NCBI GenBank assembly: GCA_048013815.1
Contig: CM106586.1
Location: 18,476,001 to 18,540,000, forward strand
Source of the DNA: Setoptus koraiensis
Lineage: Eukaryota; Animalia; Arthropoda
Reading direction: 5' to 3'
Length of the DNA: 64,000 nt
The translations under genes and the position numbers were made by a program. The number at the start of each line of letters is the position of its first letter. Within the stretch, counting starts at the first letter, position 1. The notes beneath the pieces are model-generated. The model worked only from the letters and a program-made list of their open reading frames with translations, was not told the origin of the DNA and searched no databases. Of this stretch, positions 16,155-34,544 are shown one piece after another.

Positions 16155-17176
16155 GAGCTGTGGCGATATAATTAATTGAGCGCCGGCTGGATAGTTGCGG
16201 CCAAGTTGCGCGATGCCAGGGCAGATAAAATAATGGTGGCAAAGAATTCGCGCAACGACGCTCGCTCACTTGTTACTAGCAAGTTGTTAGCGCCGAACCG
16301 TCGTCTCGTCGTGATTTGTCGCGATTGTTGTGGCAAGTTGTTGTGGCAAGTTGTTGTGGCAAGTTGTTGTGTGTTGTTGCATGTTGTTTTATGTTGTTGT
16401 TGTTGTTGTTGTTGTCGTTGTTGGTGTTGTTGGTGTTGTTGCATGTTGTTGTCGTTGTTGTTGTTGCATGTTGTTGTCGTTGTTGTTGTTGCATGTTGTC
16501 ATGTGTGGTGTGTGAGCAGCATGTTGGCGTATGAGCAGTGGAGCAGTGGAGAATAAACTGGAAAGTCGATGATATTATCACTTGTTATACACTTGTTCAT
16601 ACTATGTTTGTTTGCAGCTAGTGGCTGGAGTGTGCGCACGCATTCAAATCAGCATCGTCGCTGGCGACTGGATCGTCGCTGCTAGCGCCGACTCGCCGAC
16701 AACAAATCTCGGCGCTCATTCAAACTATCGCCGTCGACAGCTCCATTGGTTTGCCATCAACAACAACAACCAAGACAAAACACAACACAACAACAATTTG
16801 TCAAATCACTGCTCGTTATCCTGGCATAATCAGCATCAGTTAACACACAATTGGTCGCGAACATCAACACGACACCCAATTAATCAGTCAGTGCGTATCA
16901 ATCGATCGATCTGGCTGCCAGCTCGTTTGCCACTCGTCTGTCACTCACAATCAAGCGATCAGCACAACAACATAACACAACAGCAGTCAGCAATTAGAGC
17001 TACTAATTAGTATTTTTCACAACACGACACACTCATTCGCGGATTCATTGTCACGCAAGTCCGACGCACGACACTGTTAGTAGACACAAGTAGACTACAA
17101 CTGGCGCTGATAATAACAATAATTCATTTATATAGCGCTTCATTTGTACGTCGCCCACGCACTCGCGCCGCACGGT

Positions 17177-17256
17177 CGCATACATCACACACCGCATACA
17201 TCACACACCGCATACATCACACACCACATACATCACACACCACATACATCACACAA
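17177..17256. repeat. Tandem 16-mer array (CGCATACATCACACAC)x5, upstream of the ITP start codon
   Basis: Three exact copies followed by two variant copies. Confidence 0.9.
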
Positions 17257-17410
17257 TCACATACGTCGTACCACACAACCAAAGTCACACGAGTCAAACA
17301 AGCGGAATCGCCAGAAACCGGAAGCACGCAGTAGCACGTAATAAGGCAGTAACAAGTAATATAATTACGACAATAATAAGTATATTATATTATAGATATA
17401 TAGTTATATA

Positions 17411-18165
17411 ATGGACACCAACAGAATGATCCGGTCGCTTTCGGTGGCGCTCGCGCTGGCACTTGTGGCGCTGCTGTTCGCGGCCAGCACCAATTATCAG
17501 GTTGAGGCCAAGGGCATATTCAAGCGCAGCTTTGCCGGCCTGGGCTGTCTGGGCGTTTACGACAAGGCCAAGTTTGCCCGGCTAGACAGAGTGTGCGAGG
17601 AGTGCTACCAATTGTACCGAGAGCCAGACATTCATTCAGCCTGCAGGTAAGTTTATGGGAAATCTCATCAATTATTGATGACTTTACAGCGACTCTAAAT
17701 CACTTTTCAGTGCGCAGCCATATCTCATCGCGCCGTCTCGCCATATCTCATCGCGCCGTCTCGCCATATTGCACGTGCCGCCGTGTGAGAGCCCGTATGA
17801 GAGCCCGTGTGAGAGCCCGTGTGAGAGCCCGTGTGAGAGCCCGTGTGAGAGCATCCAGTAACTAATAATCCAGTAACAGAGAATGTGCGTTATGTAATTT
17901 GGTGGCGAAACAACGAGAGTAGGTGCACCCAAATGCGGGTGCAGCTCCACTTGATGTAATAGTTGTGTTGATAGCATCTATCCAATCGCGACTCATATCA
18001 ATCTATGTCTCTCTAAAGTAGGTTCAAGTTGTTGTTTGCGAAGGCACAACAACCATTGACAAGGCGCCGACCATTGCGAGCCAAGCGAGAGCAATCGAGA
18101 GCCAAGAGCGAAATGAAAACAACAACAGTCGGCTGTTTGTTGTTGTTTGCCCTCGTCGTCAACAG

Positions 18166-21156: not shown

Positions 21157-23715
21157 GTGAAACAAATCACATCAATTAAGTTCAATGGCTCGCCAACTGT
21201 CGCTCGACTGTCTTGCTTCCGACAACAGGTAGCGATTAAATTTGATAAAAAATTTGCATACGCGCCTCCTTATCGCGATCGGTATCTTTTCTTTTTTAGT
21301 GTTTCGCCAGACAAACAAGATAGGCCCAGCTGATGATAGGCTCCCGTGCGTTGCGAAATAATAACTAATAAAATACCAATCGATTACAGCTAATCAAGTA
21401 GTGGAATAAACCTAGTTGCTCGAGCGATTGTCATCGCTGCACAATCACTACCAAGTGTATGCGATCTGCATCTCGTCTGGTGGTATATTCTTGATGATTA
21501 TATTGGCGTTGTTACATTGTATCAGACAGCGAGGAGACACACAGCCCGAACAGAGAGAGAGAGAGAGAGAGCGGAAATTCTCGCAAAAGAAGAGAAAAAC
21601 CTCCGCTTGGCGAGACTCGCCTGGAGCGCAAAACTTACAGCAAAACTTATAGCAAAACTTATAACAAAACTTACGCCCGGCTTGTCGCTGTTTGACTTGC
21701 CAGTTAGTTGTGTTTGCGAAACAAATCTCCATGTCAAGCCAAAAATAATGTTGCTCGAGATGATTACATGATGATGATGATGATGACTAATCATCTGCAT
21801 GTTAGATAAACAGCTAAAGTTATCAGCGGCGTGAAGCAAAACAGAGAGAAGAAAAAACCACCGATTAAATCCGATGAATGAAACTTGAACTATGAGAATG
21901 AAACAGGTCTACGACAGGCCAATCACCATTAATGTGTGGCGATCGACACATCAATGGACCAGAGACTAGAGACTATTCATGGTTACATGATCATTATTAT
22001 TACTTTTGTGTTGCCTTTCAGTACACCAACAATGACGATCAACCGATAACTTATTTATTTTATTATCATATGCTCATAATGAGTATACTTATGAAAGCGA
22101 CAGAGAAGCCGCCGATAACTCCAAGTCGTCGAGTTCACATATAGCCTCGGGCTCGGGAATAACCTCTTTGGAGTTTGTTTGTTTGCCATGGCGTCTTGTT
22201 TAATTAAACCATGTTCATTACCTTGTTTTGTTGGCCTGACCACGTTGTTGACAGTGTAAAATGTGGCCAGCGAACATAAAGCCACATAGTTACAGTTGTG
22301 CCCTATTGGTGTCAGTCTGTTGACAGATAGACCAGATACACAATAACAGATATGTAACAACAATCAATTAATATTGACACGTTCATCTGTCAATTGTTCT
22401 AGAACTATTGTGACGCTCACAATTGACCCATCTACTGTCATTGAAACTCACGTTCTAGGCCTTTCCTCGACGCGTTCAACACCTGAACTGTCTCTGTTGA
22501 CGATAAGGCTGACTTTTTTTGCCAACAATTGTAAGATTTACCATCATCAGATAAATTATAGTGGTGATTGTTTGCGAGCCAGAGAGGAAATTTTGCCTCG
22601 TGCTCGTCATTGAAAATATACCAGCTGAATGCAGTGTATATCACGATCATCGATTGTCTTGTCAAGTTCAGTAAATGTACCACAGAAACTTGAGCTAGCT
22701 ACAACAAGAAATAATAGACGGATGAGGTAGCCTGAGACGAGCAGCTAACAGCATCCTAATAGCCTGACGGTAATATCTTGATTGTGTTTCCATAAAATCA
22801 CGAGTATTGCACTAGTTTGGTGCGATTATGCAATCGTGATTGCCGGATGGCACAACAGTCGGCGATCCGCTGTATCCTTCGAACACACAAGCTAGCGAGT
22901 GTTAATAGGTGCTGATAAGGGAATGAATGCTCATGCTGAATCATATTATAATCAGATCATTAACTGCGAACGACTAATAAATTTAATGAAAAGAAGTGGT
23001 AGTTTGGTTTATCAGCATGACTCACTCTAGCTCGCCTTCTGAACGACTCATGAGCGACTCACGAGATCGCAATAGATACACTAGTATGCCAGTTCAGCCA
23101 TTATGATCGCCTTATTCTCCACAAAGATACACATAAGGGATACAGAAGATGTTGTTGGGTTTTATCGCAAGAATCTCATTGATTCAAGAGGAAATTACCC
23201 TTTCATCGCACAGGAGCGCTGGAAAATTTAGGGCCTTGAACGCTTAGGCAACAGACTTGACACCACCGAAGATAACGCTGGCTGAAACTGAACTCTGTGT
23301 TGGTGAGATAAAGTTGCAAATAAGAATACCAATAATCAATGGATTCGGCTGAGATCTTGTTGCGAAAAGTAGTAGTCATCACATACGACAACTCATCTGA
23401 CAATCTTGACACTTTGTTGCAGACAATTCAGTAATTCAATTCTGGCGCCAAGAAGAACAGCACCAGAGACACCTATCGAGGAACTGCGGAATATTTTCGC
23501 TCAAAGCGGAAAGAAACAACATGCGTGCTAGCTCTGATCATATCCAATGGAGCTGTGTGGATCTCGTTGATTTTGGCATGAATGTTCTGAACCAGACCAG
23601 TCATATCAGACTAGATTACTCAATTATTACTACGAACATTGTTCATCAGACCGGGTACTGGCTATCTCTCATCAGACTATTATATTTATAATAAAGGAAT
23701 ACAACTATCATCAAA

Positions 23716-24517
23716 ATGGGAAGAAGACCGGCCCGCTGTTACAGATACTGCAAGAACAAGCCGTATCCGAAATCGAGATTTTGCCGTGGTGTGCCAGACC
23801 CCAAAATTAGGATCTATGATCTGGGACGTAAGAAGGCCAAGGTGGACGAATTTCCCACTTGCGTTCATTTGATTTCAAAGGAATGGGAACAAATATCGTC
23901 AGAGGCACTCGAGGCGGCTAGAATTTGCGCCAACAAGTACCTGGTCAAGACATGCGGTAAAGACGCCTTCCATTTAAGAGTTCGAGTGCATCCATTTCAT
24001 GTTACCCGTATCAACAAAATGTTAAGTTGTGCCGGAGCGGATAGGCTGCAGACAGGAATGAGAGGAGCCTTTGGTAAGCCCCAAGGAACTGTTGCTCGTG
24101 TCAACATTGACCAACAGATACTTTCAGTTCGTGTCAAAGAGAATCACAAGGAGAATGTGATAGAGGCCCTGCGTCGTGCCAAGTTCAAGTTCCCAGGACG
24201 TCAAAAGGTAAGTGCTGACATTCAAGACTACTGTTATTGCAACGTAATAACTGAGATGACAACTTTTAACAACGGCGCAACATTTATCTTCGAACTAACC
24301 TTATACTAACCACTCGTGTTTACTTCTTTTTCCTATGCCTCAACAGATTGTTGTATCCCGCAAATGGGGTTTCACCAAATGGGACTTGGATGAGTACCAG
24401 AAGTTGAGATCGGTTGGTAGATTGCAACCAGATGGTGTGTATTGCCATTACTACGGCAATCATGGTCCATTTAGCCAATGGGTAATGATTCAGAGAAAGA
24501 ACAGAGGTCTCGCGTGA
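23716..24517 (+). CDS. RPL10: 60S ribosomal protein L10 (uL16), copy 1. Exons 23716-24207 and 24347-24517, 220 aa
   Basis: [37 protein letters not shown]...[25 protein letters not shown]; 139-nt GT-AG intron with TACTAAC branch point restores GRQK|[11 protein letters not shown]. Confidence 0.98.
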
Positions 24518-24909
24518 AGAAATGAAATTAATTGTAATCATTTGCGTGGGTGCAAAAGTAAAAATAAAATTCAATAAATGATTAACGAATTTAATTCAAA
24601 AATTTGAACGTTTTGTTATTGGAATCGTGTTCTTGACACGCTAGTTTATTTATTAATTGGCTGATTGATTAAAGTATAGTAATAAATGATCAGTGAATGT
24701 CTATGTAAGTATATATGCATGTTTGTTTGTATGTATGTATGTATGTATGTATGTCTATGTATATATATATAGTTAGATAGGTAGATAATTAAATGTGCTT
24801 TATATGCATCTTGCTTAGAGATGTATGGTGGTTGTTGATATATATATATATAGTGTGAGTGTTGGTTCGAGATAATAAGACTAATAATAATAATGATAGA
24901 TTCTGCCGC

Positions 24910-26605
<1,696 letters not shown>

Positions 26606-27032
26606 GCGGCAGAATCTATCATTATTATTATTAGTCTTATTATCTCGAACCAACACTCACACTATATATATATATATCAACAACCACCATACATCTCTAA
26701 GCAAGATGCATATAAAGCACATTTAATTATCTACCTATCTAACTATATATATATATATATATATATACATATACATACACATACATACATATATACATAC
26801 GTACATACATGCATACATACATACGAACATGCAAATATACTTACATATACATTCACTGATCATTTACTACAATACTTTAATCAATACGCCTATTAATAAA
26901 TAAACTAGCGTGTCAAGAACACGATTCCAATAACAGAACGTTCAAATTTTTGAATTAAATTCGTTAATCATTCATTTAATTTTATTTTTACTTTTGCACC
27001 CTATGCAAACGATTACAATTAATTTTATCTCT

Positions 27033-27834
27033 TCACGCGAGACCTCTGTTCTTTCTCTGAATCATTACCCATTGGCTAAATGGACCATGATTGCCGTAGT
27101 AATGGCAATACACACCATCTGGTTGCAATCTACCAACCGATCTCAACTTCTGGTACTCATCCAAGTCCCATTTGGTGAAACCCCATTTGCGGGATACAAC
27201 AATCTGTTGAGGCATAGGAAAAAGAAGTAAACACGAGTGGTTAGTATAAGGTTAGTTCGAAGATAAATGTTGCGCCGTTGTTAAAAGTTGTCATCTCAGT
27301 TATTACGTTGCAATAACAGTAGTCTTGAATGTCAGCACTTACCTTTTGACGTCCTGGGAACTTGAACTTGGCACGACGCAGGGCCTCTATCACATTCTCC
27401 TTGTGATTCTCTTTGACACGAACTGAAAGTATCTGTTGGTCAATGTTGACACGAGCAACAGTTCCTTGGGGCTTACCAAAGGCTCCTCTCATTCCTGTCT
27501 GCAGCCTATCCGCTCCGGCACAACTTAACATTTTGTTGATACGGGTAACATGAAATGGATGCACTCGAACTCTTAAATGGAAGGCGTCTTTACCGCATGT
27601 CTTGACCAGGTACTTGTTGGCGCAAATTCTAGCCGCCTCGAGTGCCTCTGACGATATTTGTTCCCATTCCTTTGAAATCAAATGAACGCAAGTGGGAAAT
27701 TCGTCCACCTTGGCCTTCTTACGTCCCAGATCATAGATCCTAATTTTGGGGTCTGGCACACCACGGCAAAATCTCGATTTCGGATACGGCTTGTTCTTGC
27801 AGTATCTGTAACAGCGGGCCGGTCTTCTTCCCAT
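27033..27834 (-). CDS. RPL10: 60S ribosomal protein L10 (uL16), copy 2. Exons 27834-27343 and 27203-27033
   Basis: Mirror image of copy 1 with identical protein and identical 139-nt intron. Confidence 0.98.
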
Positions 27835-30800
27835 TTTGATGATAGTTGTATTCCTTTATTATAAATATAATAGTCTGATGAGAGATAGCCAGTACCTGGT
27901 CGATTCTTCTATCCAAATATGTAAATAATGTATGACTAATGTATCGGCGTTTCTATGTAAATATAGCACAGGTCGGCAAGCAGCATCACCGATTGATGCC
28001 AGCACTCACGCTGTTTCTTTCCGCTTTGACTGAAAACGTTTTTCCCGCCTCCGGCAGATGTCACTGATGTAGTTTTTTCTTTTCGATCAAGGTTCGATGT
28101 TCGATAGGCGACATTCGAATACATTTGCTCCGACGGGAGGATGAGCAGACGGCGCCTCGACCCAAACTTCGTTTTGGCGTCTGTACCTGACCGGCGCCTG
28201 GTCGGATTTGGCCATCCGAAATGGAGTAAATAGTCTGAAGTATCTAAGACAGAAGAGAATGATGAGAATGATGGTAGCATGCTTTTTTAGCCTTGATTCT
28301 TGTCGATTAATATTCAGTGGCAAATATGAACAGATATGAATTTAATTGAATTTATCTATGAAAATCGATCGGGCATCAATCCAATTGATGTCTCAGGCAT
28401 AGCGCTCCTCTTAGCAATGGTCATACCCGGCTTGACGACCCTACTGGCCCGCAACACTAACTGTGACGCTGTCATAGAGTCTTCGTTAGACCTGCGATAA
28501 ACAGTGAGATGGCCCCAAATGTCATCGATCGGCACTAAATCCCTTGGCAAACTCCAAGAAGCGCCACCACTATTTCTAGAATTTATCATGGCGATCTGTG
28601 ACGACCATTCACTTGAATCTCATGAAATTTCAGTCCACCGGTCATAAAATGAACAATCTAGCCCATAGAATACACCAAAAACCGTACAGAGGCGACATTC
28701 CGAGACCGGCAACGCTAAACGGGCTTCAACACAACGAATCTTGCCTCTCTTACATCTTGTTAGGTCTGAAATGTGGCGCTCATCTCGTGATCCTCCTTCG
28801 TGAGGAGCCGATCGGCTGCAGCTAACCTAAATCTACCCGTTCGTATCTTGTCCTCTCAAAGGGACTTGTTCACTTTACTTTCCCATAGTCTATTTTCAGC
28901 TCTTCAGATATTTCACTCAGATTTCTAGCTCAATAGTCATTGAGATAAGCCTGTACTGGCGAAGTTAATCATTGCTGGGGCAATTTGTCGTGCATCGCCT
29001 CGCTGAAGATTATTCTCTCTTCACATAGCAGAATTGGCCTTGAGATTTAGTCCGTAGATGTTTTTGCAACTCTAGCTCATTGTTGCCAGCTTGACTTGTA
29101 TAATTGTCTAGTTGGACAACAACCCAGTCAGTGTTGCCGCCATTTAGACAGACACATTCCATTTAATGGATGTGTACACTGCCATCCAAGATTATCAAAC
29201 CGCTTTTCGAGTTTGAGGCTTCAGATGCTTTTGTTTAGTGTTGAGTCACAAAACTTGAGACTTGTTGCTTTAAATTCATCTGCAAATCACATGGGGGTGA
29301 GCTGCGTAGCATTCTTTGTCGAATCGTTCGCAACAATACCATGCCGATGTGACCCGATGGAGCCTAGATAAGCCTTCAGTGTAGATAAGCTCTCAGTATA
29401 CTCACATATGTAACGCCAGCAATGGAGAACATTCACATCTATGGCATACAGGCTATAGTCGATACAACATTTGAAACACAAATCAATCGAATTGCATTGG
29501 CAAGTTGGGCCAAAGGAAAGTCATCAATGGCAGGAGGGTGGTGTATGCTGTTAAACAGAAACAATACTTTTACTAAAATTGCTAACTAAAACCGAGCTGA
29601 ATGTAATGTAAACTTAAAAGCTTCCATGTTCGAAAATTCGTCGTGAGCATTTTCACTATGTAGAGACTCAACTTTCTGACACAAAGTCAGCGGGCTCAAA
29701 ACAGTTCAATGCGAGGCTATCAAACTCTTTGTTCTACATCTAAATATTCTAAATTCATTTCCTTTGATTTCATAGCTATCATTAGCGAGATTCCGTCGGA
29801 ACAATCGAGCTGTTACTGACTGACTGACTGGCTCTACTATTACTATTGCTATCAACGAATGGCGAGATAAGGCTAATTGAGTTGTGAGCAATTTCCATTT
29901 GAGACACTCGTCAAATTAGTGAGCTATTTCTCTCTACCATACTGGCAACTTGCAAATGGAACATACATATGATGTAATGCTGCAATTTGGACAACATTAT
30001 GCGGCTTTTTGCAAATATATACATATAAATACTGCACTACATTGCATAGTATAGATATGTTGAGATAGAGGAGTAGATATATAAATATATATCAATTACA
30101 TTTGTGTTTCAGTTAGACGGCTCGGCAAGCTATGTTGCGTGTGTGTGTGGGGGGGGAGGGGGGGGGTGTAACAATCAAACCACCAAGGACGCTCACTGTG
30201 CTGGGCACGATGTGCTGTTTGCGTGTTGCCGTACCCCGGCGCCCCTCGATCTCCACACCCAGGCGGGTCCCGTTCGTTGGGGCTTTATCGGATATTTGGT
30301 AGACAAACACAATTGCAACACCGAGCGCCCAGTGACGGCATTCGTGAATCATGTGCATCGATAGTCATTTGGTTGTACCCAAAGGGTCTTGTCACTTGTA
30401 GCCACCAAATGGCATCAATGTGCCCGAAAAAATCACTTCCAATCGTCCGATGCCCAACCTGGATCGCCAGACTACCCGATGGCGTCTTGCTCACCTGTAT
30501 AACAGAATATACTGTACAACCAGTATACATGCGAAATCTACTATTCGCATGCGAGAATAGCCGATGAAAACCGATGAATCTCACACCTAATCGCAGATAT
30601 ATCACGCGGACATGAAGCGACCCACGCCTACTCGCCATGCCGGACCGCGACTAGCCCGACACACAGTGGTGTTCGTGCTCGCTGTGCGCTAGATCGTTTG
30701 TGTGTGCTTACGTAAATCTGAGTATGCGCAGTAAAGGGCATCCATGGCATGACCTGTAACATTTGACAGCTTGATGGAAACACCCTGCACAGAGCCTGTG

Positions 30801-32332
30801 TAAAGCGTATGAGTTTGTTCGGCGATATATCGTTTAGTTTAGGCGCACCTAAAGTGACGCACACACAAGCTATTTCTTATGGTGTTGGTGACGGACGAAC
30901 AAGGCGGCTGCTGCTGCTTCAGAGAAACCAGCAAAGGCAACGCACAAAAGCGCCTTTTATACACAACCACACAAACATATAAATTTTGTACACACGAACA
31001 TGTAGGCATTGGAACGTCGCAGACGGGCAATCTCTGTCAGAGGGCCACTCTGACAAGGGCTATATTCGAAAACAACAACAACAACAACAACAACAGCCAT
31101 TACTGCATGGCTGGAATAAAGTCACATCAGCTACATATGAGCGGCGGTTAGAAAAACTAAGCAGCCAGCCAAGTTTGTTGTTTCCAGATTTGTGAGGCTC
31201 AAGTGGAAATTCAACAGACGCAGATAGGAAACAAGTCGCAATAAGTCAGAGAGTAGGTTGCTGGTTTACTGTGTTGTGTATGTGTACACGACCCTGTATT
31301 CCATCAGCGGCAGACATTACATAAATATATACTATGGTATAGGGCTACAGTATATGGCTAGACTTTCGAGCTGGCTGCTCGCCTTTCACAGTCTGTTGGC
31401 GAAGTGTGTGTAGTATTTGCCTTCCTCTCTCCCTTTATCTCCTGTGTTTCTTTGCTATTTAAATGGCGAGCTCTCTGGCCCTGCTCTGGCTGTTGCCACT
31501 GCCATAGCGCAGTAGAGAGCGAGAGAGAGAGAGAGCGAGCGCTGGCTAGACAGAGGGACAAACGACCAATGTTCGTCGGGTAGAAGGCCTTAACTTTATT
31601 TTAGCATTGGCCTGGCAGTAATAATATCATTATCGGGCTACAACAATAAGTGAGCCCACATTATTATTGTAATCGTGGTAGTAGTGGTAGTGGTGGCAGT
31701 GGTGGCAGTGGTGGTAGTGGTGGGGCTTTGATGGTAAACAAGTCAAGGCTCAACAACGGCAACCACCATCTGCAAGTGAAGTTTAGTCAGTCGCAGTAGT
31801 AGTGGCAGAGGCTATGCCACCACCAACAGCACAGAACAAAACACAACTCTGAGTCGCATGTACACAAGCACACTACCATACTTTGGTCACACACACACAC
31901 ACACACTCGCACAGAGCGTCGTCGATTTGGCACAGAAACAGCACTCGCTGGTGGCAGCGAACAACTGAAAACAACATTTCGATTCGAGAACGCCAAGTGT
32001 AAGATGTATGCCAACTAAATTTACTCATATCTTCTGTATCGCGCAATACAAACCAGCGAAATCGCCATTATTGCTATACTCGAATCATATCTTACACACA
32101 GCCAAACAACCACTCGCTGTATTGTGTCGAATTAATTGTATTTTGGGGCTCCGACGAGACGAATTACCAGATTTTAGAGTAAAAATCGTTGCGCCAGTCG
32201 CCCGTAACACACACACACACACAAACGCACACACACACACTCATACACAAAAATATAAACACACACACAAAGAGAGAGAAAGAGAGATAACAAACAAAAG
32301 AGGAGCACAACACACACACACACACACGATCG

Positions 32333-32600
32333 CAAGCAGCACAGTAATAATCGCACGCACTAACACACAGCAGCAACATCGGCAGCAGAAGTTTCCTCGG
32401 ATCGCACACATATAACATAAACAACAACAAGAAAAAAAGATTATATATAAATATCATCATCTAGTATTATATTCTGATACGTTTATAGGTAATAATAATA
32501 CTTGATATATCACTCACTTGTATTCATTAATTGAGCTTGAAAACGAGATCTAACACACAGATTGAGCAGTCATTGGCGAGAGTTTATAGCAGCAGCAACA
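32333..32600 (+). promoter_or_regulatory. Non-coding element upstream of HEXIM, homologous to the H3.3 upstream region (25927-26175)
   Basis: Colinear shared blocks: CAAGCAG..., ACGCACTAACAYACAGCAGC, GGCAGCAGAAG, ATATAAATATCATCA, TGATACRTTTA, ATTGAGCTYGAAAA, ACACACWGATT, GGCGARAG. Homology is seen directly; regulatory role inferred. Confidence 0.7.
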
Positions 32601-32924
32601 AGCGAACACGCACACAGTCGGAGCTTAAGCTAGAGATATTAGAGAGCTTATCTGAGTGAGAGTGATGCAGATTCTCAGCAACATCGCACCAGACAGCAGA
32701 ACTAACAACAACAACACAAACAACAACAGTGCACAACTGTATCAAATGAATCGATTAGAATTATTACAAAATAATCATTATCACCATTATTATCAGCCAC
32801 ACTTACTTTTCATTAAACACAGACGATACGTCGTGGATCGTCAATTGCATCAATGCTCTATAACTACTAATGCAGCAACTAATCAAGCAACAAAGCAATC
32901 AGTAATTTTCCAATAAAAAATAGA

Positions 32925-33065
32925 ATGAACAATAATAATCAACAATATTGCGTTGCCACTTTGAGCGTCTCTGACGCTGATCAACATTTTGAAATGATGA
33001 CACAGCAACAACAGCAACAGCAACAACAGCAGCAGCAACAACAACAACAACAACAACAACAGCAA

Positions 33066-33118
<53 letters not shown>

Positions 33119-34544
33119 GCAGCAGCAGTATAATGCAGCTATGGCCCCACATCCTCAGGCAGCACATCATTTTCTAGCTCCCTATGGTCCTGCTGCTAGT
33201 TATCATTATCCGCAACAAACCGCAGCGGCCATTTATCACCAAAATCAAAACATACAGCTTGCCTTGCAACAACAACAAGCCCCACCGCCACCACCTCAAC
33301 CTACTACACAAATGCCATCGCCAGCGATGGCCTGCGTTCCTTTAGGTCCACCGCAGCCTATGCAACAGCAACAGCCAGCTCAGGTGATACAATTGCAACA
33401 AAGGTATGGTTTATCTAATTGCAATGCCACCAATAATATGATTGCTAATAAGGCCCATCAACATTATTGTTTGTCACAGCTGATGCATCCTATTATGCGT
33501 CAGCGTCTTAATCGTCGCCATTCTAAGTTTCGTGGACGTCATGGTGGTAACAGCGGCGGCGGGGGCCAGTTTCATGGTGGTGGAGGAGACAACGCGAGAC
33601 GTTTGAACAACAACAATGGACCAAGACAGCGGTCTAACAGCAGTGGGGCATCCGGTGGTCAAGCCATATCTCTATCTTCGTCAGGAGCTAGCAATCATCA
33701 GCAATCCAACAATAATAACAAACAAGATTCAACCAACAACAATAATAATATTAGTGGTAATAAATTGTTAAAGTCTCGTAGATTATCTAACAATACACTC
33801 AGTAATAATAATTTCCAAAAACAAAATAATAATCTACGAATCCAGGGACGTAAGGCACCATCTAACACAACACAATTTATCATGGACGACCATTGTTTGA
33901 TTGAGCCAGATTTTGACTCTATGCGTCAAAATATAATGGCACATATCGAAAGAGGTAGAAAGCGCAAAATTCTTGAGCAACAGCAATCGATATTGCGAAA
34001 AAAAACTCGCGACGACATTATTAGAGCGTCGCAACAAGCATCTTCCGCCAATAATTCTGATAACAGTAGTAGTAATAATAAAAGTGATAGTGTAGCAACT
34101 ACATCTCAGTCAAATATCAGTAACCCTAAAGACCAGCAACAGAAACAATTGGATCTTCAAGCAAGAGAAAATCTTGAGAATCTTGGTGAAAGAGGCACAC
34201 TCTCAGTGTCTAATAGTAATCGAGGTAGTACGAGAAGTCTTAATGATGATGATCATTCATCAGTAGTGTCAGCAATGTATCAATCGCCCCAATTAGAGCA
34301 TGATTATTTGCAAGAAGAGTTTCAGGAGGTTTATTCTAATATACACACTGAGAGATTGAGCTCAATGAGCAAAAATGAACTTATCAACGAGTATCTCCTC
34401 TTAGAGGAACGAGTTGAAGAGCTTGAAAATCAATTGCGTGAAGCACAAAGGATCAATTTATTGGAAGATATAGATGAGGAAACTAATGAGGATTTGTCTA
34501 CTAACGAAGTCGAGGAGTTCTGTGAGAAAATAAAATGTGAATAA
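32925..34544 (+). CDS. HEXIM: HEXIM (7SK snRNP / P-TEFb inhibitor), intronless, 539 aa
   Basis: KAPSNTTQFIMDDH corresponds to the PYNTTQFLM motif; YLQEEFQEVYSNIHTERLSSMSKNELINEYLLLEERV matches the HEXIM coiled coil (FSETYERYHTESLQNMSKQELIKEYLELE in human, recalled). Confidence 0.92.
33003..33128 (+). repeat. Coding CAA/CAG tract, 42 Gln, in the HEXIM N-terminus
   Basis: 126 nt of CAA/CAG in frame. Confidence 0.95.

Follow-up and report, generated by a model that had tools for sequence, protein, structure and literature searches.

A non-coding segment shared by the upstream regions of HEXIM and one H3.3 gene in a mite probably arose by local rearrangement of neighbouring genes

The upstream regions of HEXIM (a P-TEFb inhibitor) and of one of the two H3.3 genes in this mite genome contain paralogous copies of one non-coding segment. 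On balance we attribute the two copies to a local rearrangement of the gene order RPL10> <H3.3 HEXIM>, after which each copy would have come to form part of the untranslated leader of the gene behind it and might also supply its core promoter. In the window (the whole 64-kb stretch of DNA that was analysed), the first copy, element E, lies upstream of HEXIM at 32333-32601 (+ strand) and ends 323 nt before the ATG of the open reading frame (ORF). The second, element E', lies directly upstream of H3.3b at 25927-26173 (+ strand) and ends about 20 nt before the ATG at 26195, as the initial annotation of this DNA had it. That annotation had also aligned 32333-32600 by eye with the H3.3 upstream region and proposed a pairwise alignment with shuffle statistics, which confirms the colinear similarity as real. 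The local alignment (25900-26194 against 32300-32660) has 272 columns with 202 identities (74%), and its score of 171 compares with a mean of 22.3 for 300 dinucleotide shuffles (sd 2.85, maximum 33; z=52). Using blastn within the window, we recovered the E/E' match at E=2.5e-31 and found no additional copies in the 64 kb beyond the three at this locus (the third, partial copy is described below). An ungapped core of 86 nt is 80% identical. Both elements lie on the + strand, as do the genes downstream of them, i.e. in sense orientation, so that E and E' have the significant colinear similarity, the orientation and the position upstream of an ORF expected of paralogous duplicate upstream regions.

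E and E' both contain the four shared blocks quoted in the initial annotation, the exact 15-mer among them, but these do not stand as conserved motifs. An exact run of 15 nt, the longest between E and E', arises by chance with P=0.56 at 74% identity, and the clustering of identities is what chance expects at this level (P=0.65), so the blocks provide no evidence of motif conservation. Mismatches and indels between the two copies are scattered randomly; the mismatches look like neutral decay, and shared regulation of H3.3b and HEXIM is possible, not indicated. A TATAAATA box is identical in the two elements (at 32446 in E and at 26037 in E'), and the duplicated segment likely consists of a promoter-proximal part (blocks 1 and 2, then the TATAAATA-type box) followed by an untranslated leader.

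The partial copy, which contains blocks 1 and 2 only, is found upstream of H3.3a at 25512-25595 (- strand), in agreement with the earlier remark that the first block also occurs, inverted, before the other H3.3 gene. Positions 25542-25595 match 25918-25969 on the E' side in inverted orientation (83% over 54 nt, z~13), and 25512-25587 match the HEXIM copy E (74% over 76 nt). The H3.3a block is mirror-symmetric to the start of E' about a palindrome centre near 25757: the block-to-ATG distances are 222 and 226 nt, and the block midpoint is 25756.5 as compared to an arm midpoint of 25757.5. Past block 2, as far as the TATA-like box, this copy has no significant homology (P=0.08-0.12). What remains of the H3.3a leader (25321-25495) is unlike E' and E (z=0.0 and -0.9), and the H3.3b leader and E are still strongly alike in the corresponding stretch (z=16.5). 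Among the 106 ungapped columns present in the copies of H3.3a (a), H3.3b (b) and HEXIM (H), 10 informative sites group a with b, 14 group a with H and 16 group b with H, and the b-H identity is 72% in the three-way shared part versus 74% in the rest of E/E'. Given this near-equal split and these identities, the three copies seem to be of similar age; the difference between the H3.3a and H3.3b leaders would then reflect a breakpoint rather than old divergence.

The two H3.3 genes belong to a palindrome with RPL10 at its outer ends. The left arm (about 23649-25330) contains RPL10a (+ strand; ATG 23716, intron 24208-24346) and H3.3a (- strand; 24910-25320), and the right arm (about 26185-27901) contains H3.3b (+ strand; 26195-26605) and RPL10b (- strand; ATG 27834). 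Both H3 genes encode the H3 domain (PF00125) and are marked as H3.3 by S31 and AAIG residues, and the RPL10 intron uses canonical GT-AG signals. According to the arm alignment, the arms are 96.7% identical over 1717 nt (98% in gapless pieces) and their boundaries are sharp, the outer one at -67 of the RPL10 ATG and the inner one essentially at the H3.3 ATG. The centre of the spacer (25596-25917) retains weak residual mirror symmetry; its left half, reverse-complemented, matches its right half with z=4.0, a score that 0 of 500 shuffles reach. Mirror blocks of 83-85% are located 100-220 nt past both arm ends, including a diverged 39-nt pair outside the arms (23494-23532 and 27998-28036, 85%). 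The locus thus combines near-identical inverted arms with older, diverged homology outside the arm ends, as gene-conversion palindromes do, and this outer homology suggests an old inverted duplication whose genic core has been kept homogeneous. The 39-nt pair, which lies upstream of both RPL10 copies, carries a polypyrimidine TTTCTTTCC motif pointing away from RPL10; the motif may be a promoter element or the sign of a divergent transcript.

About 4.4 kb of DNA (27902-32332, containing the mirror block 27998-28036) separate RPL10b from E. This stretch has no counterpart in the relatives described below and no repeat copy elsewhere in the window. Within it, 30100-30700 is GC-richer and open in several frames on both strands, and has no Rfam match at E<=1. 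The E<=1 Rfam and tblastn searches covered this DNA on either side of positions 31683-31724. The initial annotation had seen no H3 coding remnant behind the element at HEXIM, and this holds: tblastn (E<=10) detects no H3 or RPL10 coding remnant after E or anywhere in 27902-32924, and a search with H3.3 returns the two intact genes only. As no coding remnant is contiguous with the upstream homology, the identification of E as an H3.3 pseudogene or partial gene copy was rejected.

With a set of 16 HEXIM relatives, all about equally distant from the protein in the window, we were able to compare the neighbourhood of the gene. The order RPL10> <H3.3 HEXIM> is kept wherever the flank is long enough (at least six related mite contigs): RPL10 (+), H3.3 (-) and HEXIM (+) occur in this order, one copy each, in L002, L005, L006, L007, L008 and the P0004 contig, and L009 has H3.3 (-) before HEXIM (+) at the contig end. 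The ATG-to-ATG distance between H3.3 and HEXIM in the relatives is 1128-2117 nt, and a CHH-like neuropeptide gene is found to the left of RPL10 in relatives and window alike. The window differs in that an inverted H3.3b-RPL10b copy and the ~4.4 kb sit between H3.3a and HEXIM. Judging from gene order, H3.3 and HEXIM are ancestral head-to-head neighbours, which makes the shared element readable as the product of a local rearrangement. The recruitment proposed in the initial annotation is not borne out as one between unrelated loci, since the two genes are head-to-head neighbours in at least six relatives. A literature search found no paper on a genomic link between H3.3 and HEXIM.

The H3.3 coding sequences of the relatives are 80% identical at the DNA level to those of the window. 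E, E' and the H3.3a upstream region have no reliable similarity to the relatives' intergenic regions (only AT-rich matches of z~4, on both strands), and the relatives are therefore too diverged to polarise the event. A comparison of lengths (853+323 nt in the window versus 1128 nt in L002) was dropped, as the start codons of HEXIM cannot be compared across species. In the relatives, a strongly conserved H3.3-proximal block, read in L002 (1057-1132), L005, L006, L007 and L008, lies some 95-230 nt upstream of the ATG and carries two CCAAT-type (ATTGG) motifs as well as GACGTC. Pattern scans show that this block is absent from the whole window, which indicates that the H3.3 upstream region was remodelled or replaced in this lineage. 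Two otherwise unalignable relatives share a 31-nt element with 97% identity (L006:2883-2913 and L007:5607-5637); its place is between H3.3 and HEXIM, 390-610 nt ahead of the latter, and it is absent from the window.

The course of events that we favour would be as follows. A local, probably complex, rearrangement of RPL10> <H3.3 HEXIM> in this mite lineage would have made E and E' and placed the inverted RPL10-H3.3 copy, together with ~4.4 kb, between H3.3 and HEXIM. The genic arms would then have stayed 97-100% identical, probably via arm-to-arm gene conversion, and the non-genic parts would have drifted. Each full copy, in sense orientation, would now be part of the 5' leader, and perhaps of the core promoter, of H3.3b or HEXIM, and both full copies would have stayed free of upstream AUGs.

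Either side of the locus may have supplied the segment. If H3.3 was the donor, the promoter and leader of H3.3b were copied to a position before HEXIM, where they would now drive or co-regulate that gene. This direction, which we hold only tentatively, would account for the first block standing in exact mirror position before H3.3a and H3.3b, for the mirror similarity running through the spacer centre (E' looks embedded in the H3.3 palindrome), and for the homology of E starting only at block 1 (upstream of E, z=1.0); it is also consistent with the relatives, in which no inverted repeat is found between the two sides of the H3.3|HEXIM intergenic region. However, this direction implies that the H3.3a leader, being unrelated to E', was replaced at a later time, and it gives no reason for the copy to stop within 10-20 nt of the arm boundary and the H3.3 ATG. 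Moreover, the a, b and H copies are equidistant, and the G-poor composition of the relatives' H3.3 leaders is seen in the H3.3a leader, not in E'.

Because the three copies are about equidistant and the H3.3a leader is unrelated to the others and G-poor like those of the relatives, the reverse direction is about as likely, and we regard it as possible with the same reserve. E would then be native to the HEXIM side, the inverted H3.3-RPL10 would have been inserted behind a duplicate of it, and H3.3b would have borrowed a HEXIM-type promoter and leader. The E/E' homology stops at the arm start (26173-26185), as it would at a rearrangement junction. H3.3a, which sits in the ancestral position and orientation, is preceded by another leader whose G content of 7% resembles that of the relatives' H3.3 leaders (2-11%), and E' (13%) and E (16%) are nearer to the relatives' HEXIM leaders (17-27%). 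The missing CRE/CCAAT-type H3.3 promoter block also agrees with HEXIM as donor. The composition argument is weak, however, no relative's HEXIM upstream region resembles E, and blocks 1 and 2 must have pre-existed as an inverted pair, or else extra template switches are needed.

Upstream AUG depletion is a signature of 5' leaders, and both full copies are depleted. E contains 0 ATG versus 3.5-4.2 expected (P=0.004-0.012), and E' contains 0 versus 3.1-4.0 expected (P=0.007-0.013). E is enclosed in a 656-nt ATG-free zone on the + strand (32009-32664), the putative HEXIM 5' leader, in which 7.7-9 ATGs are expected (P<0.0005); each of the five remaining orders of A, T and G is found 6-10 times in this zone, and 11 ATGs are present on the opposite strand. 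Among the 2265 ATG-free gaps in the window, the zone ranks second in length. The 322 nt that flank E on its left, which do not share the ancestry of E, also have 0 ATG (3.1-3.5 expected, P=0.014-0.025). This sense-strand depletion points to transcribed leaders with promoter-proximal sequence ahead of them, and a promoter-proximal/5'-leader role of E and E' is likely. The promoter/leader part of the initial annotation is thus retained, as the homology most likely covers the promoter-proximal part plus the 5' leader; its choice of HEXIM as the recipient is one of two about equally likely directions, given three copies that are about equidistant. Another long leader is possible just upstream of a CHH/ITP-like neuropeptide exon (17498-17647, 96% identical to relatives), where the window has its longest ATG-free gap (806 nt, 16605-17410, + strand).

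Four upstream ATGs occur in the interval from the end of the leader zone to the HEXIM ATG (32665-32924, + strand). They may be removed by an intron, or act in upstream-ORF control of HEXIM, or else lie ahead of a start site downstream of E. The first ATG after the 656-nt desert opens an 84-codon ORF (32665-32916), which stops 8 nt before the HEXIM ATG and may represent a small gene, an upstream ORF or intronic sequence. Speculatively, a putative 269-nt 5'UTR intron would run from the GT at 32654 to the AG at 32921-32922, and its excision would remove all four ATGs. HEXIM had been called intronless, which is correct for the ORF and leaves room for such an intron in the 5'UTR. In an extended version, HEXIM would start from a captured H3.3-type promoter and leader, and a newborn 5'UTR intron (~32654-32922) would remove the old, AUG-laden sequence, coupling HEXIM transcriptionally to one H3.3 gene in a mite genome that is otherwise poor in introns; we consider this combination quite improbable.

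The same four ATGs, lying between E and the HEXIM ATG, would also suit an inert E, a rearrangement leftover that decays neutrally and has no role in HEXIM expression, with the HEXIM promoter located further downstream. A short leader could lie in the 54 nt directly ahead of the HEXIM ATG, which contain no ATG, and the random spread of mismatches and indels fits such decay. We nevertheless judge an inert E unlikely. The 656-nt ATG desert is specific to the sense strand and covers E and both its flanks, and if an ATG-free ancestor decayed neutrally, each copy would stay ATG-free with P~0.15-0.20, giving a joint chance of ~0.03 for both.

The HEXIM ORF itself (32925-34544, + strand) encodes 539 aa with a match to PF15313 (E=5e-17), and its similarity to relatives starts near residue 190. 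Residues 1-190 (32925-33494) are polyQ/N-rich and without counterpart in the 16 relatives, many of which have a HEXIM that begins ~30 residues before an invariant APSNTTQFIM motif. This N-terminal extension may have grown out of CAG/CAA repeats as coding sequence specific to the lineage. Exact-protein look-ups of the HEXIM and RPL10 ORFs, in a collection without this species, gave no match.

E could also be a piece of a transposon or some other dispersed repeat, located ahead of three genes by coincidence. A burst would fit the star-like way in which the three copies are related, but the 64-kb window contains no other copy, each of the three is oriented towards the ORF next to it, and two of them occupy mirror positions in the palindrome. 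We found no terminal inverted repeats on the element, and the identification of E as a terminal-repeat transposon was rejected; no tail or pol III boxes were seen by eye. A search of JGI metagenomes with the 27-nt block 1 pattern gave 0 matches, a blank that carries little weight. A sequenced eriophyoid genome contains 1.54% transposable elements, 84% intronless genes and a median intergenic distance of 538 bp (PMC7738191), and a transposable-element content of ~1.5% also argues against a repeat, which we hold to be very improbable here.

An even smaller chance, close to nil in our estimate, is given to a small structured non-coding RNA gene (e.g. 7SK-like) in two copies, the conserved-ncRNA alternative of the initial annotation. 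The element adjoins HEXIM, which is a 7SK partner, and double changes are seen in 2 of 33 predicted pairs. Yet Rfam gives no match at the gathering score in the window nor at E<=1 on or near the elements, and the fold energies are no better than those of shuffles (z +1.04 for E and -0.50 for E'). The consensus fold reaches -15 kcal/mol for 272 columns, and there are many indels.

The new facts are small: a conserved RPL10-H3.3-HEXIM microsynteny, and this lineage's loss of an H3.3 promoter block common to the relatives. The main value of the result is a corrected picture of the H3.3-HEXIM link, for which conserved adjacency together with a local inverted duplication would account, and not special functional recruitment. 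If E and E' truly work as leader and promoter of both genes, they would provide a clean natural example of regulatory DNA copied between neighbours, and the copying would have occurred in a small complex rearrangement within one of the most compact animal genomes.

Several known systems resemble parts of this locus. In promoter/5'UTR capture, known from the evolution of new and chimeric genes, a neighbouring gene recruits a new first exon or leader. When capture proceeds by segmental duplication, a few hundred bases of upstream non-coding DNA are, as here, duplicated without the coding region and placed in sense before another ORF. Here, in contrast, donor and recipient were already adjacent divergent neighbours, and use as promoter or leader is read from ATG depletion alone. 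The ampliconic palindromes of sex chromosomes have arms kept identical by arm-to-arm gene conversion, and the RPL10-H3.3 palindrome is like them in its arms (97-100% identical) beside a diverged spacer and in its sharp boundaries; it differs in its tiny 1.7-kb arms of housekeeping genes and in a spacer that keeps mirror-image remnants, and conversion here is a probable rather than an observed process. Template-switch duplications (DUP-TRP/INV-DUP, MMBIR type) likewise leave an inverted duplicate beside the original plus an extra direct copy of a short flank. The junctions at our locus are too old to read microhomology, and a single-event origin is only suggested because the three copies are similarly diverged. 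Finally, as in bidirectional head-to-head pairs, H3.3 and HEXIM are divergent and 1.1-2.1 kb apart in all relatives with enough flank, whereas in the window the pair has been split by the insertion and H3.3a now faces H3.3b. The locus is best understood as an ordinary kind of promoter/leader duplication, with E as a leftover of the local reshuffling of head-to-head neighbours.
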